From Macrostomum lignano (taxonomy: Eukaryota), in NCBI GenBank assembly GCA_002269645.1, contig NIVC01000986.1, forward strand, positions 62,001 through 126,000: a stretch of 64,000 nt of DNA. Direction: 5' to 3'. The notes under the pieces are model-generated. The model made no database searches. It saw only the letters and a program-made list of their open reading frames with translations, and was not told the origin of the DNA. The first letter of the stretch is position 1. Each line of letters begins with the position of its first letter. A program made the position numbers and the translations under genes. Shown piece by piece: positions 9,013 through 61,721 of this stretch.

Positions 9013-9511
9013 ATTGTTGAGCAAAACAAGAGGGTCTCTGCATAAAGATCAAAGAAAGATATTATCTTGACACAATGATGCACTTGCATTCTTTTTTGGG
9101 CTTGACACTTAGCTGAGCTCTGCTCTACAGAATTGAATTTTTATTTCTTTGAATTTGAGAACCAAATCAAGAGGCTTATAAAACATATTGCAAGGTAGCC
9201 AAGAAGCCATACAATGTTGATCTGCATGACAAATTAGACATTGAGCCATTGAAGAGAAGTCAAAGAGCTATACAAGTTCATCGAAAACACTTCTTGAAAG
9301 GCAGCAGAACTAATTGCCATGGACCCAGATAGTCTATCAATCCCATTGGCTCTCAAAGCAGCATTTTTATCTAAGCCAAATAGAAATGCTAGCCAACCAG
9401 ATGTTGTAAACAATGCAACAATTGCTAAAGCTAAATCAGAAACTATACCCCCATAAAAAAGGGATAGACCACCATAGTGCAGAAGGATAGGTATAAAATA
9501 GAAATCATATA

Positions 9512-10297
9512 GGCTCATTCCATATAAGCATGGTCATAACATGACAGGCTATTTTTACTTATAAAATGAAATATAATAATAGAATATACTAAACCAATAT
9601 TTTAAATGAAAGATAATTTTGTCAAAAATATTTTTATAGAGTTTCATGTAGATATCATCATTAGTATAGATGCTATTAAACCTTGAATGGCACTTATGGT
9701 CGTAACAACAGGATTTTTGACATATAGAAACTAAAAGGTAAAAGTCTTATAACATTTTTATTTTTGATATTTTGCAATACATTTTTTAAAATTTGACTAA
9801 GAACATCTTTAGTAATCATACTCTTTGTAGAATATATAAACTCAAAAAGGCAACAAAGATACAAAAGAAAAGGCAGCCTTATGGTCGTAACATTATGGTC
9901 GTAACATATTTTTTTTCTGTCAATTCAGTAACTTTGAGGTACCAATATATTAAAAATATAATAGATTATTTGGTCACCAATACTTTTATCTGATGATGCA
10001 AGTACTATACTTTTATCTATAGTTTGTTTCAACCTTCCAAAGCTTTCTATTTGTTTTTAAAAGGTACACAAACTTAATGATGTCTTTTGCTTAGAAAAAT
10101 GTCTAAATTTTTACAAAAATGACTTTTTGCCACTTGATAGCATACTAATCTAACATTTTATCATTCATTTATTCTTAGATTGTAGATATTACACATAAAA
10201 AACATTTGGTAAAAAAATTGGCTGATAAGGCAATGGCAAGCAAAAATATTGACTTTTTTCTATTTTCCAAAAATGTCCATCTTATATGGAATGAGCC
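9512..10297. mobile_element. Non-autonomous TIR element (MITE), 786 bp
   Basis: Perfect 17-bp TIR ggctcattccatataag (9512-9528) / cttatatggaatgagcc (10281-10297), with TATA on both sides. AT-rich non-coding interior with ttatggtcgtaaca three times (9694, 9879, 9893). Confidence 0.8.
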
Positions 10298-11866
10298 TAT
10301 ACCAAGGCTAGGTATAGTATATATTGTATATCATTCATTTTTACTACAGGGCCTTTCATCATACATATTATAACATTATATATGTTGGCCACACTATTGT
10401 ACATTATATGCATAGTGCATTCACAGGTTCACAATAAGACTATGAATTTATAAGTGGCTACATTACTACTATTTATATTACTTGAAGTTGTAGTCAATAT
10501 AATAGTATGTTATATGATATTTAATAATTATATTAGAATGCTCATTAAAAACAAAATTTACAATATGCTTTTAATGTTTTTTCTACAGTTTAAGTATAAA
10601 AAACTGTACAATACAATAGTTTTTAAAACCTTGCTGCAATAAAACATAAAATTTATATTTTTAGGCCAAGCAAATATATATTGATGTACCTTTTATTTTA
10701 GTCTTTACTTTATATAATGATTTTTTAATTTAATCAACACTTAATTTATCTGTATACCAACTTCTATGCTTTTCTTGGAATGTGTTATATTTCTTGGGTA
10801 TAGTTTCTAAATGCTAACTTTTGTTTTGGTAAGAATATACTTTGCTATAAAATTTTCTATTTCAAAAAAATTGAAAGAGAATATAGGTAAAATTTATCTT
10901 ATTTAAACAATCCTGCTGTCCACAGTAAACATTTAACAACTTTTGCAACAATCCTATAATGTAGGAATAAAAAAATAAAAATAAATAATATCTAATTATA
11001 TTGGCATTGCAGTTTATAGTGACTTTTTGCCAAAACTAACTAGGGGGCATAACCATTTTTGTTCAATTTAAAAAAAGATATGCTATGCAGAACTTCAAAA
11101 GCACCCATTTTAATGTACTTTGCAAAGATTTTTAAAGCTCTAACATTAACTCTAAGTAGGCCTTAATATTATACTAAACTAAAGCAAAAATTAATATAGC
11201 CTAATAATAGGCCTATATAAATATAAAAATCTAAGATTCTTGATTTAAAGATTGAAATCAAGAGAACTAGGCCTAGTTCATTAATAATTGTATCAATAAT
11301 CATATCAAAATTTTAAGTAGAATATACTCATGAGTCATAAATGCCTCGAACCTGTCAACCTGATCCAGCCAACCAACCAGGTGATGCTACAATATTACAG
11401 TATTATTCATATTTAGATCGGGTCCAGGGGCAAGGCTGGAGCTCTAAACCAACTTAGTAATTTTATCAAAGCTGTCACTTACGCCACTTACCACTAGATC
11501 CGCGTACTGTACTAAACTACGCCTACTACTAACAACAAATGGTACAACAACACGATTATTTCAACAATTTATAACGGATATTTCGGTAATTTCGTTTATT
11601 TTAACGGTAACTTTCCTTCAGTCGTACATCTCTGCATTTATGTTTACTTTTTTAATGCGCTTTAAAAATTTACATTATTCTTTTTGAGTGACCTATCTTT
11701 TGTTTTTCAACCAAACGATTTGCAAACATAGCATACAGCTTTGTTTTAACCAGTTATTTTTCACCGGCTTGTAGCATTAGAGCTACATACAGTGGTATAT
11801 AGTGGTCCTTGGCCTCTGCTAAAACGCAGCTAAAGTTTAACTTTAACTCGATTATGGCATATGCTA

Positions 11867-11893
11867 GACTGACTGACTGACGGACTGACTGTT

Positions 11894-11925
<32 letters not shown>

Positions 11926-11946
11926 TGACTGACTGACTGACTGACT

Positions 11947-11989
<43 letters not shown>

Positions 11990-12235
11990 TGACTGACTGA
12001 CTGACTGACTGACTGACTGACTGACTGACTGACTGACTGACTGACTGACTGACTGACTGACTGACTGACTGACTGACTGACTGACTGACTGACTGACTGA
12101 CTGACTGACTGACTGACTGACTGACTGACTGACTGACTGACTGACTGACTGACTGACTGACTGACTGACTGACTGACTGACTGACTGACTGACTGACTGA
12201 CTGACTGACTGACTGACTGACTGACTGACTGACTG
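11867..12235. repeat. (GACT)n microsatellite
   Basis: About 90 nearly perfect units. Confidence 0.98.
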
Positions 12236-12319
12236 AAATGATTAAGACATTACAACAAAGCTTTTTTGGATGCTAGCATTGCCCAAAGAGCTGGTAATAA
12301 GCTGCAATGCTATATCACA

Positions 12320-12325
12320 TTTATT
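12320..12325 (-). terminator. Polyadenylation signal AATAAA of the peptide gene
   Basis: tttatt on the plus strand, about 60 nt past the stop codon at 12384. Confidence 0.5.
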
Positions 12326-12383
12326 CAGAGTCAAAGAAGCTTATTGACTCTATAGTTAATTTGAAAGCGAGGCTGCCGCTCGA

Positions 12384-12554
12384 TCATAGCATGCAGCCGC
12401 CCTGACCAACGCAGAAGCCGAGATTGCACACGTTTTCAGGCTCTCCAACACAGCTGCCATCGTCACTCTCAGCGTCGCAGCTGCAGTCGCCAGCCGCCAG
12501 TTGCGCGGCGCCTACCAGAACCAGAGCGACGAGAAGCATCAGAAGTCTCAGCAT
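12384..12554 (-). CDS. Small secreted cysteine-rich peptide precursor, 56 aa, no family recognised
   Basis: Manual translation: MLRLLMLLVALVLVGAAQLAAG-DCSCDAESDDGSCVGEPENVCNLGFCVGQGGCML*. Hydrophobic leader, 6 Cys, GCC-ATG context, AATAAA at 12325-12320. Below the apparent ~60-aa floor of the ORF track. Confidence 0.72.
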   Translation of the reverse strand: MLRLLMLLVALVLVGAAQLAAGDCSCDAESDDGSCVGEPENVCNLGFCVGQGGCML

Positions 12555-14639
12555 GGCTCGGCTTGTTGAAGGAGTTTGATCGAATCTTTAAATGAAAGTA
12601 TTGAAAATCGCGAGTTACAGAAAGCTCGGAGGTGTGAATCGAACTCAATAAATGTAAAAGAGAGTCCGGAAGCCTTCATAGGGGCGGGGGCGGGCGGCGA
12701 GGACTTTTATGGCTCTGTGTTTTTGGTAGCTGTCGAAATGATCGTCAGGCTTCTGCATACTGGTACTCTCCGGCGAATCGACGTTGTCAGCTAGGAGCGG
12801 CTTTCTTCTGAAGCGGAAATTTTCATTGCTGTGCCGCCGAGTTGACTTCACCACTTTTATTTCGCCTGTCTGCTGGGATTGTTTTGCACCCGTCACTAAT
12901 TGTTGACTTCATTTTTTCCACACACAAGTTGCCTCAAACGGCACAAGATTGCGTCCGCCCCAATTTTTCCTAACTTTCTTTAAGTTTCTTTCAGTTTTCT
13001 CAAAGAAAACTTCTGATTTGCTGTGTTCAAGTCGCATTTTGTCAGAGCACGTTTATTGCAAAAGCAAACTCTCAGACTCGAAGTCTACCATAGCGTTTAG
13101 GGAGATCCTTTGCCATGACTAAAGCCTAGCTGCTTTAGAGGTTTCGAAACCGCTCGTATTTAGGATTTGTCAACATATTGCTCCATCAAATTGAAAGTCT
13201 GTGACACGAGAAGCCCAATTGGCCCTCGCCGGCGGCTGAATGGCCCACTAGCAAGCACAGCTGGATGTCTTGGGCCTGCACCGCCACCCCCTTTTATAGA
13301 CACTATGATGACGAAAAGCTCTTAACTGTCGTTTTCAGTGGCTTGCGAAGTGATAAGCTGGAAGGCGAGAAAGGGCAATTTTTATTTTTGCTCAAACAAA
13401 TCTTAAATGAGCGCGATAGAGGCATGGGATGTGCGTACAGAGACAGTCACAGAGGCATGGAGGTTCAAGCGTTGAATAATGAGCGTACAGCGTGAGACAA
13501 TGCACGTTTAGTCAACATCTCCTAGGAAAACTCGGTAACAAAGTAATCCAATTAAAAGCAGCTCAATTTGACCTTGATTTTGGGATGTACAAGTATTGAA
13601 AAAAATATTTTTCTCCATCCTTTTGCACACATAGACTAAAACAGCCTGACTAGTTGGACAGCAAAGTCCGATTCCATTTTGACAGTTGCTTCAAAACTGA
13701 CACTCTGGTTTGTGTACCCAAAAGGTCCGCTTCAGTTTTGACAACTCCTAATCAAAATTAAACAGTCACTGCATCCTTAATAAGTCCGTTACTCTGGATT
13801 AAGTCAACTGCCCCTAAGCTGAACTGCAAAGAGCAATATTCTGTTTCCCCAGCGCAGCTCCGAAATAGTTGAATCTGAAAGATGGCCGCATTTGAGTCTG
13901 AGGATTTTTAGTTCGCATTCCAGAAACTCACGTAAGTACATCTACATCTACCAGCAGCTGGTAAAAGTGGTCTTTATAGTCAAGAAAAACTCGGTTTGTC
14001 ACGGCTGCTAAGGGCGAGATCAATTTATGTATGTCTACAAAGAATTTTAAAGCTGCTTAGCCCGCTTACTATTAGTAGAGCCTTGCAGTATGGACTCCTA
14101 ATGTTATACTGAAGTAAAAATACCAACTAATAAACGTGTTCAAGTGTTTTTGCATGCTAAATTGTTGAAACAGAACACAAACGATGGTTGCAAAGTGAGG
14201 GGCACGGGGTCGCATTGAGAATTGCTTTTATTTATTTAGACTTTCACAAGCCTCGCCAGGGTCTGCAAGCATCTGCATCATTTTGAGTTCATCGAGCTGG
14301 CATGATTGAGCAGCCAATCGCGTGTGGGGAAAAGCAGAGCTGCGGCAGATCGCCAGCTTTTGCAGGTTTTGTTTGCTCATCGGACGGGAATGCGCTCACG
14401 GAGAAAGGCAATGCTCCCCTTGTCTCTGCCACCGAGGTTCGACTCTTGACTGTTGCTGGAAGGCGATTGACGGTGAAATTTCTGCCAAAGTGGACCAAAA
14501 GGTGGCGGAAAATTTTGGGTTGCTCACGAGTCACTTCCAGGGAGATTTGAAGCTGCGGAGATTTTGGAGGGGACCCTCAGGGGAAACCTCGGCGGGAATC
14601 TCTGGACAATTTTCAGGGAGACTTCATATGCAGATTCTC

Positions 14640-16335: not shown

Positions 16336-16870
16336 GATTCCTGCTGTAGATTTCTGATGTGGCATCCTGGTGTAAATTTACGGGAAAGATACCTGGCAAA
16401 GCTTGCCTTGCAACTTTCCTGTCGGGTTACTGGTGTAAAGTTCAAGAGAAGATTTCGGTGTTAGATTCCTGTGGGAGATTCCCTTATGCGTAGTTTCCAT
16501 GGGGACTTCCAAGAAACCACTTGAAGAGCTGGAGAACTTGAGGCTTCTATTGAAATTTTGTAATTTTTTCATGGGTTTATTGATACCTGAAGTTGTGGAA
16601 TTTCTGTTCCAGATCAAGGTTTCACAGAAAGAATTGAATAAGTTTCTGTTTGGATGCAAAAGTTCACACCTTTTACGAGCTTATCGACCCCCCTAAAGTT
16701 GCTCAGACTTCCCCCTGGAAACAGCTTGGGCTGGGCTGAATTTCCCTGCCCGGCTTGACTTTCACTGCCAGGCGGCCAGGCCGTTCGCTCTCTGCCACCA
16801 GCCACCCCCTCCCCAACAGATCCGTCCGCCATCTGGGCGACAGCAGTTGACAGCGGGCCGCGGACCCACC

Positions 16871-18890
<2,020 letters not shown>

Positions 18891-20104
18891 AGATCGCCGC
18901 AGCTCAGGCCGGTCATGTGACAATTGGATCCGGGTCCGCTCTGCAGGAGGCGGTTCCCAATGCCCCATGCCCCACCACACTTCCAGTCGCTACAATTTTG
19001 CGTCCTCAAAGCCAGTCGCGGCGAAGCCATAAAGAGTTCCAAAAGTTAGCGAAGCGGTTCCGGCCGCCCCAGAATGGGAGATTCTTCCCGCTCGGCGGGG
19101 ATCATCAGGCGGCGGATTCCCCAGGCGTCGTAAAGAAGTCCTGCCGGGCGCCAGCTGCGCAGCGGGCCCGCAGCCGGCAGTCGCAGGGAATTCAATCAGG
19201 CGAAGTCGGCCGCTATTAGTGAAATTGCGTTGGTTTAGCGGCCGGAACTGACCGGTCTTTGTCCGGGGCTCCGGCAGCTTTGAGTGCAGGAAGCCCGACA
19301 GCCCGCATCGCCATGGAGACTCGCTGATGAGAACTCGCTGCCCTCCCAGCAGAGCAAAGTCAGGCGTGGAAGCCGGGCTAATTTATGCACGGGAGGGGGC
19401 CGCCAGTTGCATTAATTAAGCTGGACACGGAGGGAGAAGTTTGTGCAGGGGCCGCCTGCAGCTTCACTGACTCTGCCGTGCCGCGGTCTCGTGCCGCTGG
19501 CCAAGCTCTGCGGCGAATGTTTTCCTGCCGGATGCTGCCGAGCTCGACTGGACGCATTTTTTAGACTTTAGGGAGTTTTATTGGTTAGACCGGAAGCTTC
19601 ACAAGTTCGAATGGAGCTTTTTACCACTCTTTGACAGATTTTAAAAGGAGATTTGGTTAATTATACCCGATGCCCGGCAGGGAGTCTTTACTACTGGAAA
19701 TGCCATTATACGCCCGCAATTATCAATATTCCAATTCGTTCTGGGGGCATGCAGATCTACTGCGAGCTTGCACCGGGAATTAGCGAGCTCTGTAAAAAGC
19801 TTCCCGAGCACCGCGAGCTGCGGTGCTGAGCCGCACAGGCTGGTGCAGGGTGAAATTAGACTGGCAGCAGTTCAATGCTGGCACAGGCTAAACTGCCGCG
19901 GCTCCCAGCCGCTCCCTGCGGGACATGCAGCGATTCATCACTGGAGCCGGGGCGGCCGTGGCAGGTAGGCGTGACCTGAGCTCTGAGCTGCACGGGTGGC
20001 CCGCTGGCCTCCTCCGGGTTTAAAACACGCCTGTTTATCAGCCGTATCCATGGTTACTCAGCTATAGATGCTTTCTCAAAAGCCGAATGATTCTTCAACT
20101 GCTC

Positions 20105-30815: not shown

Positions 30816-31745
30816 CGCTGTAAAACCTGTGTGAGCGTGTTTATGACTGCATGCCTGTGTGCAGCGCTTGCATGCGCTCAGCAGTCAGCGGAATGGGCCG
30901 AATTCCCTTAGCGCTAAATATTTTAATTGCTATTGCTGAATGCACATCGCTACATTAATGCTAACCTGCTGCTCGCAGACCTCGGCTGTGGGCCGCCGTG
31001 AGAAGCAGCAATTGATGGCCGCTTAAAATCAGCAGCAAATTGGGCTGGGCGTGGAGCGCTTCTCTAACAATTGCGAAGTTTCTGCTCCTAAAAGCAAAGA
31101 AAAAGTGTAAGCCCTATAGGCTCAGCTGGAGCAGTCTATCGATTGCTGCTCTTGGCGGGTCTGCAGCCAGCCCAAAGCCAGGCTGCCAGATGCTCCAACA
31201 AGCTCAAATAAAGAGCGAACAAAACAAACCGGGTAAGAATTGCAGTGGCTGCAGGGAATGCCGCAAATGCTGCTTCAAACTCGCGCCAGAGCAATGCTGC
31301 TGCTCCCCGCTGAATGTACTTTTTCTGCGCTTAGTCGATATGAAAAACCTAGCGCGAGTCCCAAGCGTTCTCTCACCTGCAGCCGATCTGCAATCGTTTG
31401 TTTATGCGCGTGAAAACTTCAAGTTCACCGCCCCAACTGTGTACAGCAAGGCTAACTGAGATTTTGCAATGCACCCTCAATGTTGTTTTGTCACCGATTT
31501 AAATCCCCGGCATATCAAATACCACTGCTGCGACTAATTATTTATTAATTATCAGTGCGATGCGAATCACCCACGCATATCGACCAGTCAGTGCCTGATC
31601 TTCTTCTCATTTCTGTACATCATGACTTCTGAGACAGGCCGCGGGACCGGATGGCCACGGATTTCTAGAGTTAAACGAAGCAGTTCCGAGTCCGGAGCCA
31701 AGTTATGCTATTGGCCACCGTCAGGATGAGCAATTGAGGTGGCAA

Positions 31746-32106
31746 CTCAGTAACTGAGGATCTGGGAAGGAGGCAGCTCAGTAACTGAGGATCTGGGAAG
31801 GAGGCAGCTCAGTAACTGAGGATCTGGGAAGGAGGCAGCTCAGTAACTGAGGATCTGGGAAGGAGGCAGCTCAGTAACTGAGGATCTGGGAAGGAGACAG
31901 CTCAGTAACTGAGGATCTGGGAAGGAGGCAGCTCAGTAACTGAGGATCTGGGAAGGAGGCAGCTCAGTAACTGAGGATCTGGGAAGGAGGCAGCTCAGTA
32001 ACTGAGGATCTGGGAAGGAGGCAGCTCAGTAACTGAGGATCTGGGAAGGAGGCAGCTCAGTAACTGAGGATCTGGGAAGGAGGCAGCTCAGTAACTGAGG
32101 ATCTGG
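31746..32106. repeat. 31-bp minisatellite with the palindrome ctcagt-a-actgag
   Basis: cagctcagtaactgaggatctgggaaggagg, about 11.5 copies. Confidence 0.95.
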
Positions 32107-36231: not shown

Positions 36232-57843
<21,612 letters not shown>

Positions 57844-59684: not shown

Positions 59685-61721
59685 TCACGCATTAGCATAC
59701 AGCTTAGCCAGCTCAAGAACGAGCTCCCTGAGAAGCGCATTGTCCGGGCTGAGCGAGTCCAGCAGCTGCATCAGCTGGGCCTCCAGCTGCCGGAGGAACT
59801 GCACCGTGTGGTCCAGGGCGCCCAGGCTGCGCAGGTGCCTGACGCAGAACTTTTTCACTTCAACATCGCGAGTTCGCTGACGCAGCACCGACGAGATTTG
59901 ATCGTCGTCAGGGCAGTTCTGGATGGCCCACACGATCGGGTAGCTGTACTTGCCCTCCGTCAGGTCCTCGCAGAACGACTTGTTGTCATGGTACTCCTCC
60001 GACATCAGGTTCGCGAAGTCGTCACGGACCTGGGGAGATGTTCCATTTCAAATGGTGAGCGTCCGGGAAGGCTGCTTCACCCACATACTGGTACACCTGG
60101 AAGAGCACTCCCAGCCCAGTCTCACCTGGAAGAACACACTCCCAGCCCAGTCTCAACTGGAAGAACACACTCCCAGCCCAGTCTCACCTGGAAGAACACA
60201 CTCCCAGCCCAGTCTCAATTGTAAGAACACACTCCCAGCCCAGTCTCACCTGGAAGAACACAATCCCAGCCCAGTCTCACCTGGAAAAACACACTCCCAG
60301 CCCAGTCTCACCTGGAAAAACACCCCCAGCAGGTCGGCCATGCGCAGCAGGTCGGTCTCCCTGGCCGCGCCGCAATCGCCAGAGAAGAGGCACATGAGGC
60401 GGATGCCCAGGCCAAAGAGGCCGCCAGTCTTCATGCGCACCATCTCCTGGTACTGCTCCAGGGTGGGGCAGGTGTAGGTGTCCCGCCAGTACAGGTCGAG
60501 TCCCTGGCCGCGGTGCAGCACCAGCATCTGGTCAGTGAAGACGCGCGGCACCCGGCTGTCGGGCAGGCGCAGCGCGGTGTCCAGCGCCTTGAAGTACATG
60601 TAGCAGGCGCTGTTCAGGGAGAGCGGCAGGCCGAACACGTGATGGGCGACGGGCACGCCGCGGCGCAGCTCGGAGCTGTCTTCGATGTCGTCAATTCTGA
60701 GCGCGAGTTGCAATTTAGTCACTCAGTTTATAATAGTGAAGCCCGTAACAGTGATCCGCAGCTATGCATTCTGCTGACCCCTGAGCCCACATGTGCACGT
60801 AAGGCTAAGATGTCAAGGCTTACGGGGATTGCTGAGATGTCGAGGCTTACTGTGATTAGGGGGATTGCTGAGATGTCGAGGCTTACTGTGATTAGGGGAA
60901 TTGCTGAGATGTCGAGGCTTACTGTGATTAGGGGAATTGCTGAGATGTCGAGGCTTACTGTGATTAGGGGAATTGCTGAGATGTCGAGGCTTACTGTGAT
61001 TAGGGGAATTGCTGAGATGTCGAGGCTTACTGTGATTAGGGGAATTGCTGAGATGTCGAGGCTTACTGTGATTAGGGGAATTGCTGAGATGTCGAGGCTT
61101 ACTGTGATTGGGGGAATTGCTGAGATGTCGAGGCTGACAGGGGAGAATCGATGTGGTATTGAGGCTAAGGGGGGATTGCTGATATCAAGGGTGAGAGGTC
61201 AGAAGCTACATGTAGGAGTATTTTATTCAATTTTTTCATTCCATTCTTTGTTGGCTCCCCAAGGGGGGCGCTGATTGCTAGTTTTTGCTAGATGCCAATG
61301 TACGCAATATGCGCCTTAGAGGTTAGTCCCAAGCAAGTTTTTGTGCAAGAGTCCTAAATTAAATAATTTGCTTTGGCGTAGAGCTACTTTGGCCTCCACA
61401 ACAAAAAAGAATAACAGCTTCATCACAGAGCAGACTCACATCAGAGAGGAATTGTGCAGCATCTCAGCGATCTCCGAGATCACCGACATAACTTCTTCGC
61501 TTACATTCAACCAGTGATTAAAGGCCTGAAATTGAAGTTAAAAAATCCAGTAATAAAAGCAGGGGCTGTTTTCTTAGCTAAAAGTGAAATACAATTGTTA
61601 CAATTATCAGCAAACTTACTTTGAAGAGCTTGCCTCGAATCTGCTTGCCACCAGCCTGGCAAATGTAGTTGTATGGTCCATTAAGGGCCTTATTCATGTG
61701 GTAGTCCAGACTCTGTGCCAT
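59685..61721 (-). CDS. GGPS1: Geranylgeranyl pyrophosphate synthase (305 aa)
   Basis: Exons 61721-61620, 61525-61440, 60696-60312 and 60029-59685, in frame. Motifs: GKQIRGKLFKAFNHWL, MLHNSSLIIDDIEDSSELRRG (first Asp-rich motif), GQGLDLYWRD, KTGGLF, FQVRDDFANL (second Asp-rich motif), EDLTEGKYSYP. Confidence 0.96.
60085..60320 (-). repeat. 31-bp repeat copying the GGPS1 exon 3 end and donor site
   Basis: cccagcccagtctcacctggaagaacacact, about 7 copies; on the minus strand TTCCAG|GTGAGA. Confidence 0.93.
60825..61135. repeat. 36-bp minisatellite, GGPS1 intron 2
   Basis: gctgagatgtcgaggcttactgtgattaggggaatt, about 8.5 copies. Confidence 0.95.

Follow-up and report, generated by a model that had tools for sequence, protein, structure and literature searches.

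A probable single-exon gene for a putative secreted six-cysteine mini-protein from a very small family in Macrostomum

Defensins are small secreted cationic peptides in which six cysteines form three disulfides, whereas peptides of the inhibitor cystine knot type are characterized by a knotted 1-4, 2-5, 3-6 connectivity. The precursors of the conotoxin superfamilies and of frog-skin peptides combine a conserved signal with a hypervariable mature region. Genes for very short secreted peptides are systematically under-annotated, although they are often involved in lineage-specific functions, among them defence, venom, mating conflict and signalling. The present study deals with an open reading frame (ORF) on the minus strand of a stretch of Macrostomum lignano DNA (contig NIVC01000986.1, positions 62,001 to 126,000; this whole stretch of 64,000 nucleotides (nt) is referred to as the window). 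The ORF (12554..12384) had been picked by eye, and its 56 codons were found to encode a member of a conserved, previously undescribed family. Like the defensins its product is small, has six cysteines and is predicted to be secreted with three disulfides, but unlike them it is anionic. It is highly probable that the ORF represents a real and compact single-exon gene for a secreted, disulfide-bonded mini-protein, belonging to a tiny family that is so far known only from Macrostomum.

The ORF comprises 171 nt including the TGA stop, i.e. 56 codons plus the stop codon (translation MLRLLMLLVALVLVGAAQLAAGDCSCDAESDDGSCVGEPENVCNLGFCVGQGGCML). Re-translation reproduced exactly what the original prediction had read from the DNA, namely the position of the ORF, a precursor of 56 amino acids (aa), a mature part of 34 aa, its cysteine spacing and its seven acidic and no basic residues. 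The leader of 22 aa (MLRLLMLLVALVLVGAAQLAAG) is encoded at 12489..12554 and the mature peptide at 12387..12488. After the proposed A-A-G cleavage site the mature part has the spacing C-x-C-x8-C-x7-C-x4-C-x5-C, and contains 7 Asp or Glu residues and 0 Lys, Arg or His. The TGA stop (12384..12386) is located two codons past the last Cys, a position common to all family members. The start codon lies in the context gagCCATGc with G at -3, and the ORF forms a local peak in GC content (about 0.57–0.60) between flanks of about 0.38–0.47.

The leader is predicted to be a signal peptide, as had been proposed. It passed a crude heuristic rule for signal peptides, was modelled by AlphaFold (three-sequence alignment) as a helix over residues 2-19, and is conserved within the family. 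Two of the 151 ORFs of 40–150 aa that start with ATG in the window passed the same rule, and only the present ORF also had at least six cysteines (an even number) after residue 20. In order-3 Markov simulations with three training sets, a comparable ORF appeared in 0.5–2.5% of 64-kb windows. Taken alone, an ORF with a signal and six cysteines is therefore barely evidence for a gene: few windows contain one, yet a genome of hundreds of megabases should contain many. It was the discovery of homologues that gave the observation its significance.

An exhaustive phmmer search, which covered 1.84 billion cluster representatives, gave three matches. Two of them align end to end with the peptide (E 5.6e-5 and 2.7e-4) at 54–57% identity; one (P0123) has 56 aa, and the other (P0122) has 82 aa and is marked 'partial'. 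Both are M. lignano proteins of assembly GCA_002269645.1, encoded by BOX15_Mlig013770g1 (PAA93506.1; locus L001) and by BOX15_Mlig020725g1-3 (PAA58764.1/PAA49576.1/PAA47085.1; locus L002 and the further copies L003 and L004). When a profile of the three sequences was searched against 5.8 billion proteins, only these M. lignano relatives matched (E 1.4e-25), indicating that the family is very small and so far confined to Macrostomum. The earlier description of the ORF as a lineage-specific gene for a disulfide-rich peptide is thus supported by the sequence comparisons. Relatives that keep both leader and cysteines, whose absence had been named as grounds for rejecting the gene, were found in Mlig013770g1 and Mlig020725g1-3.

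The family as counted here has three loci and five copies, with one copy per locus over the 137 kb examined. In tblastn and blastn searches, neither the window nor any of the four M. lignano loci yielded a paralogue or a second copy of the gene cassette. A word-index protein search with the peptide returned no match, and 0 matches were obtained when metagenomes were scanned for the conserved leader DNA.

The gene models of the Mlig_3_7 genome are based on RNA-seq data and on transcriptome assemblies (StringTie, TACO and de novo assembly), and trans-splicing together with experimental poly(A)-site data served to set their boundaries (PMC5730564). Since this annotation is transcript-based, transcripts of both M. 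lignano genes exist. The coding sequence of each is contiguous on the genome, supporting the proposal of a single-exon gene. The three Mlig020725 proteins are annotated as 'partial' models of 81-82 aa (L002 10001-10249, L003 10001-10249, L004 2730-2975), because a 5' untranslated region (UTR) without an in-frame stop was translated as the first 29 residues. The real Mlig020725 product starts at Met30 and is a precursor of 53 aa. The three Mlig020725 copies encode identical mature peptides, and in two of the three loci they share a neighbourhood, with an F-box/LRR gene on one side and a protein-kinase gene on the other; in the third, the contig starts too near the gene to show the upstream neighbour. 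This fits homeologues of a neopolyploid genome.

At the protein level, the three-way alignment showed 23 invariant positions, among them all six cysteines and the motifs CSC and QGGC. Fourteen of these lie in the leader (M1, L2, R3, L5, M6, L7, L8, A10, L11, L13, V14, A16, Q18 and A20), for which the family consensus is MLR[LF]LMLL.AL.LV..A.Q.A. In the mature part, the C-S-C start, three more cysteines, a Gly before the fifth Cys and a terminal Q-G-G-C did not vary, and exactly two residues always separate the last Cys from the stop. The cysteine framework common to the family is C-x-C-x(6-8)-C-x(5-7)-C-x(2-4)-C-x(5-7)-C-x2, with loops that vary in both sequence and length. The residues at the cleavage position are A-A-G in the window copy and A-Q-A or A-A-A in its relatives. 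By residue count the net charge is about -7 in the window copy, about -3 in Mlig013770 and about 0 in Mlig020725. The acidity noted in the original prediction is thus correct for this copy, but is not a trait of the family.

The reading frame was maintained in all copies. The coding lengths are 171, 171 and 162 nt, and every length difference is a multiple of three. No stops occur in the coding frame of the three copies, as against 3 in each of the two other sense frames. When the mature regions were shuffled, an open frame with at least six cysteines was obtained in only 1e-5 to 2e-4 of the trials per copy. Because frame, stop and cysteines are kept even though the mature codons share only 41–55% nt identity, these sequences cannot reasonably be non-coding.

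The DNA homology between the window, L001 and L002 forms one block, which begins about 160 nt before the ATG and ends at a (TCAG)n microsatellite. Identity along this block and upstream of it is uneven. It is 35–48% far upstream, 55–73% in the proximal promoter, 60–74% in the 5'UTR, 83–87% in the leader codons, 41–55% in the mature codons (the lowest in the cassette), 59–75% in the 3'UTR from the stop to the AATAAA, and 72–81% in the block that follows the AATAAA. The non-coding DNA 3' of the window AATAAA is 81–86% identical to the Mlig013770 locus. Outside the cassette, the loci gave no alignment in pairwise BLAST and no common neighbouring genes in tblastx. As the flanks cannot be aligned, the window gene is a paralogue at another locus, and not the positional orthologue of either annotated M. 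lignano gene.

The substitution pattern was estimated by the Nei-Gojobori method from a hand-made codon alignment of the three copies (18–34 codons). In the leader, nonsynonymous divergence (dN) was 0.12–0.18 and synonymous divergence (dS) 0.17–0.45. In the mature region, dN was 0.43–0.66 and dS 0.63–0.85, giving dN/dS values of 0.58–1.06. Taken separately, the invariant scaffold codons had a dN of 0 with a dS of 0.20–0.92, and the loops a proportion of nonsynonymous differences (pN) of 0.53–0.71 with a dS of 0.73–1.30. The loops are more diverged than the surrounding non-coding DNA, while the scaffold is unchanged. A conserved leader, scaffold and non-coding sequence set against changing loops would be expected of an effector engaged in an arms race, whether in defence or in reproduction, and the sequence comparison suggests such a function.

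The control elements were located by three-way DNA alignment (all positions on the minus strand). The upstream edge of homology is marked by an invariant CATAAA motif (12706..12711), beyond which identity drops to the far-upstream values. A promoter block (GAAGGCTTCCGGACTCT, 12661..12677) contains a CTTCCGG core that may be an ETS-like site; within it, GGCTTCCGGA is invariant in the three loci. A TATA-like element of the form CATTTA(A/T) follows at 12647..12654, reading CATTTATT in the window and CATTTAAG in both M. lignano loci. In L002 the distance from the start of this element to the first base of the transcript-derived model (L002:10001) is about 31 nt, and this places the start of transcription in the window near 12625. 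The 5'UTR would accordingly span 12555..12625, with its start placed by homology; it aligns with the 5' end of the Mlig020725 model.

Downstream, an AATAAA polyadenylation signal (12320..12325) is found 58 nt past the stop and is kept in all three loci. It is followed by a conserved block of 75 nt (12245..12319; AGCATTGCAGCTT..ACCAGCTCTTTG.GCAATGCT..CATCC), which probably contains the cleavage site and the downstream element, or else is merely part of the duplicated cassette. The (TCAG)n microsatellite (11867..12236; GACT x92 on the plus strand) ends the homology unit and lies in the same place in L001-L004; no shared sequence was found beyond it in the loci compared. A GCATTGC/GCAATGC hairpin past the AATAAA was dropped as a feature, as it folds no better than shuffled sequences (z -0.5 to +0.4). 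Of the gene context described in the original prediction, the AATAAA has proved to be conserved. The GC-rich box (12681..12699) is limited to the window copy, since the aligned positions of L001 and L002 are not GC boxes, and the supposed upstream TTTAAA (12592-12587) is not conserved and by homology lies within the 5'UTR; neither can be regarded as a conserved promoter element.

On the minus strand at about 13220-13310, TATAAAAG, a G-rich box and a CCAAT motif are clustered in a way that resembles a further promoter, some 700 nt upstream of the peptide gene. Neither an ORF nor a homologue could be assigned to this cluster.

Taken together, the elements of the proposed gene lie on the minus strand, with a promoter that would span about 12711-12626, a transcript that would run from about 12625 to about 12300, and the coding sequence 12554-12384. 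The N-terminal signal peptide would direct the 56-aa precursor to the endoplasmic reticulum, where signal peptidase is expected to cut after Ala-Ala-Gly22; neither a propeptide nor a dibasic site is predicted to be involved. The 34-aa product would then fold oxidatively into a small beta-rich mini-protein, in which three disulfides are formed on the invariant scaffold. In the AlphaFold model of the full precursor (mean predicted local distance difference test, pLDDT, 71) a small beta-rich core was seen besides the leader helix, and the mature peptide modelled alone (pLDDT 75) had three strands (12-14, 25-27, 31-33) and one short helix (18-21). Once secreted, the peptide may bind an extracellular target through its inter-cysteine loops. 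The family, consisting of the window copy, Mlig013770 and the three Mlig020725 homeologues, would have been copied as a cassette reaching from promoter to microsatellite.

The role of the peptide can be assigned only tentatively. Defence or surface secretion is a reasonable candidate, though short of an even chance, and a reproduction-related secretion is possible if somewhat doubtful; signalling or another function appears unlikely. Macrostomum is a model genus for regeneration, bioadhesion and sexual conflict, and the transgenesis, RNA interference and in-situ protocols available for M. lignano make the promoter of about 160 bp and the peptide directly testable.

In the full-text literature no mention of the Mlig013770 or Mlig020725 IDs was found, and a literature search gave no paper in which Macrostomum is linked with such a family of disulfide-rich or antimicrobial peptides. 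Both gene IDs were also absent from the portions examined of the supplements of PMC5730564, PMC5816591, PMC5946080, PMC12896417 and PMC7336406, and from the examined rows of the positional RNA-seq table of PMC7336406.

Several observations weigh against the reading of the ORF as an active gene for a secreted mini-protein. The GC content at third codon positions (GC3) is 0.63, compared with 0.88–0.94 in the exons of the neighbouring ABCC gene. A GC3 of 0.63–0.65 was found across all three family members, however, with 0.70–0.81 in neighbouring M. lignano exons, so that the low value is a family trait and not a sign of non-coding DNA. The structure models are of moderate confidence and were built on three sequences. 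A Foldseek search of the short, moderately confident model against the PDB gave no match, a PDB sequence profile search gave only noise (E about 0.9), and Pfam gave no match for the window peptide and none above threshold for the three members. The M. lignano relatives are absent from the PMC7336406 list of in-situ-tested transcripts, a compilation that includes the prostate-limited seminal-fluid candidates of PMC5977470. Diversifying selection on the loops is suggested but not demonstrated, as the small counts and the uncertain loop alignment leave positive selection unproven. A net charge of about -7 speaks against the window copy being a classical cationic antimicrobial that acts on membranes. 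Finally, it is from sequence that we infer expression of the window copy itself, whose TATA-like element differs from the M. lignano form, and its exact 56-aa protein was absent from the gene-position collection of called genes in an exact-product look-up.

The last two points are what would be expected if the family is real but the window copy is a silent or decaying paralogue, i.e. unexpressed or on its way to becoming a pseudogene. The insertion of a copy-specific GC box into the promoter, next to the altered TATA-like element, agrees with such a decay, and so does the extreme acidity found in this copy alone within the family. However, the ORF, the start context, the scaffold residues, the stop and the AATAAA are all intact, and the missing record may reflect the coverage of the collection, in which two other ORFs of the window were also lacking. 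A silent or decaying paralogue is therefore considered improbable.

Still less probable is that the ORF is mere cargo of a short mobile or repeat cassette, stretching from the promoter to the (TCAG)n tail, whose conservation results from recent copying and not from selection. Such a cassette would have been spread by transposition or by microsatellite-mediated ectopic recombination, and would not be a stably placed host gene. The sharp limits of homology (about -160 nt to the microsatellite), the lack of synteny outside them, and non-coding parts that are 72–81% identical between unalignable flanks are in accordance with this proposal, and a microsatellite tail after a small hairpin is reminiscent of the 3' ends of some long and short interspersed nuclear elements (LINE/SINE). 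On the other hand, there are only three loci (five copies), with a single copy per locus in 137 kb; no terminal inverted repeats and no obvious target-site duplications were found around the cassette; and the hairpin was no more stable than shuffled sequence. The homology also takes in some 90 nt of sequence 5' of the inferred transcription start, a part that would not be carried along in retroposition. Above all, recent copying predicts a mature region as similar as the flanks, yet this region is the most diverged of all and still in frame, a combination that calls for selection acting on the protein.

A chance ORF in CTG/GCTGC-rich sequence, whose leader and cysteines would be accidents of composition, could be argued from the simulated frequency of 0.5–2.5% of 64-kb windows (so that hundreds would be expected in a large genome), from the GC3 unlike that of the ABCC exons and from the missing Pfam match, but is effectively excluded by the comparison of three diverged copies that retain frame, length, six cysteines, CSC, QGGC and the stop position, with loops diverging beyond the non-coding flanks and with homologues that are transcript-derived models.

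The window as a whole is extremely rich in micro- and minisatellites, and an Rfam search of it gave no match. Its minus strand also carries a multi-exon gene for an ABCC/MRP-like ABC transporter (36235-57843, about 36.2–57.9 kb), of which six exon pieces with a GC3 of 0.88–0.94 were identified (57843-57145, 56583-56188, 51046-50555, 47019-46828, 44601-44356 and 36747-36235). The introns of this gene are packed with long minisatellite arrays, e.g. a 20-mer repeated 223 times at 51068-55534. The exon of the second nucleotide-binding domain (NBD2) had at most 47% identity among the matches listed, the best being from the fluke Opisthorchis, followed by a metagenome protein, spiders and a tick.

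Other repeats were observed in the window. Perfect inverted repeats of 21 nt (TATAGGCTCATTCCATATAAG) at 9508-9528 and 10281-10301 lie 752 nt apart in a block of 30% GC (8-12 kb), and the pair may represent a small terminal-inverted-repeat element, similar to a miniature inverted-repeat transposable element (MITE-like). A duplicated segment was found beside two (ATAG)n arrays (16703-17098, 17605-18359 and 18341-19042); the region contains two ORFs that have a stretch of 43 residues in their C-terminal parts in common, and a 273-bp unit present 2.8 times. As in the case of the peptide cassette, unique sequence has here been duplicated along with a tetranucleotide microsatellite. Minisatellite families at 60820-61135 and 31737-32106 are related to sequences in the M. 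lignano loci (L001 10690-10760, L002 877-1509). One shared unit contains GCTGAGATGTCRAGGCT, and for another, a 31-mer array, the identity to an array in L002 is about 74%. Together with the 81–86% identity 3' of the AATAAA, these families point to Macrostomum, i.e. M. lignano or a close relative, as the origin of the window.

The comparison with described families begins with the third phmmer match (P0121, E 2.7e-5), which is a bacterial surface protein with five DUF11 repeats (PF01345). It was rejected as spurious, as hhalign gave a probability of 5%. The likeness is limited to 19–27 aa, whereas DUF11 is an Ig-like repeat of about 110 aa, and the misleading E-value arose because the five repeats were summed. 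The stretch of the window concerned (12387-12470, GSCVGEPENVCNLG) resembles a GSC.G.P..VCNLG motif that is repeated in P0121.

The claim that the cysteine frame falls outside the known defensin frames was borne out, and no relative was found in Pfam, among PDB sequences or by Foldseek. Alpha-defensins are marked by the frame C-x-C-x4-C-x9-C-x9-CC and an anionic propeptide; their frame is unlike that of the window peptide, which has no CC pair and matched neither Defensin_propep nor Defensin_1 in Pfam. A sub-threshold Pfam match to Defensin_propep (E 0.039) was obtained for the two M. lignano members, in the signal-like region. Beta-defensins and CS-alpha-beta defensins were rejected likewise, as neither C-x6-C-x4-C-x9-C-x6-CC nor CxxxC ... 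CxC (paired on a helix and sheet) is present. The C-C-CC-C-C frame of knottins, with its adjacent CC pair, is absent from the window sequence. A partial resemblance was seen to the EGF-like domain, in that C-x-C-x8-C of the window peptide corresponds to its C4-x-C5-x8-C6 end, and C-x4-C-x5-C resembles its start. The order of the cysteines is however permuted with respect to C-x(4-7)-C-x(3-5)-C-x(8-12)-C-x-C-x8-C, no Pfam EGF match was obtained at E<=10, and the x8 spacing is not kept in the family, being x6 in both relatives. From these sequence comparisons the frame appears to fit no curated family, and the peptides are treated as an orphan family.

The closest systems are thus Mlig013770 and Mlig020725. 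They have in common with the window gene the leader, CSC, the order of the six cysteines, the QGGC-x2-stop ending, single-exon coding, the promoter blocks, the AATAAA, the 3' block and the (TCAG)n microsatellite, and differ from it in loop lengths, net charge and genomic neighbourhood, with an amino-acid identity of only 50–57%. If the loops are under diversifying selection, the family would offer a compact system for studying how far a three-disulfide scaffold tolerates complete replacement of its loops; if they are not, it is one more orphan family of secreted peptides.

In its mode of evolution the family is, by analogy, similar to conotoxins and frog-skin peptides, as leader and UTRs are conserved, the codons of the cysteine scaffold are invariant, and divergence in the loops outpaces that of non-coding DNA. 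The organism is a small flatworm that feeds on diatoms and is not known to possess a venom apparatus. It is a rather unlikely reading that an undescribed disulfide fold, carried on a self-contained cassette from promoter to microsatellite that is copied to new places in Macrostomum genomes, and with mature codons under diversifying selection, forms a hypervariable, conotoxin-style system of effectors in a flatworm that is free-living and non-venomous. The copies, of which the present one is strongly acidic and others are neutral, would then each be aimed at a different extracellular target, e.g. microbes or the tissues of the mating partner. The resemblance to conotoxins is confined to this mode of evolution. 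Sequence and framework are dissimilar, and conotoxin precursors contain a pro-region and are encoded by genes with introns, whereas the precursor described here has no pro-region and is encoded by a single exon.

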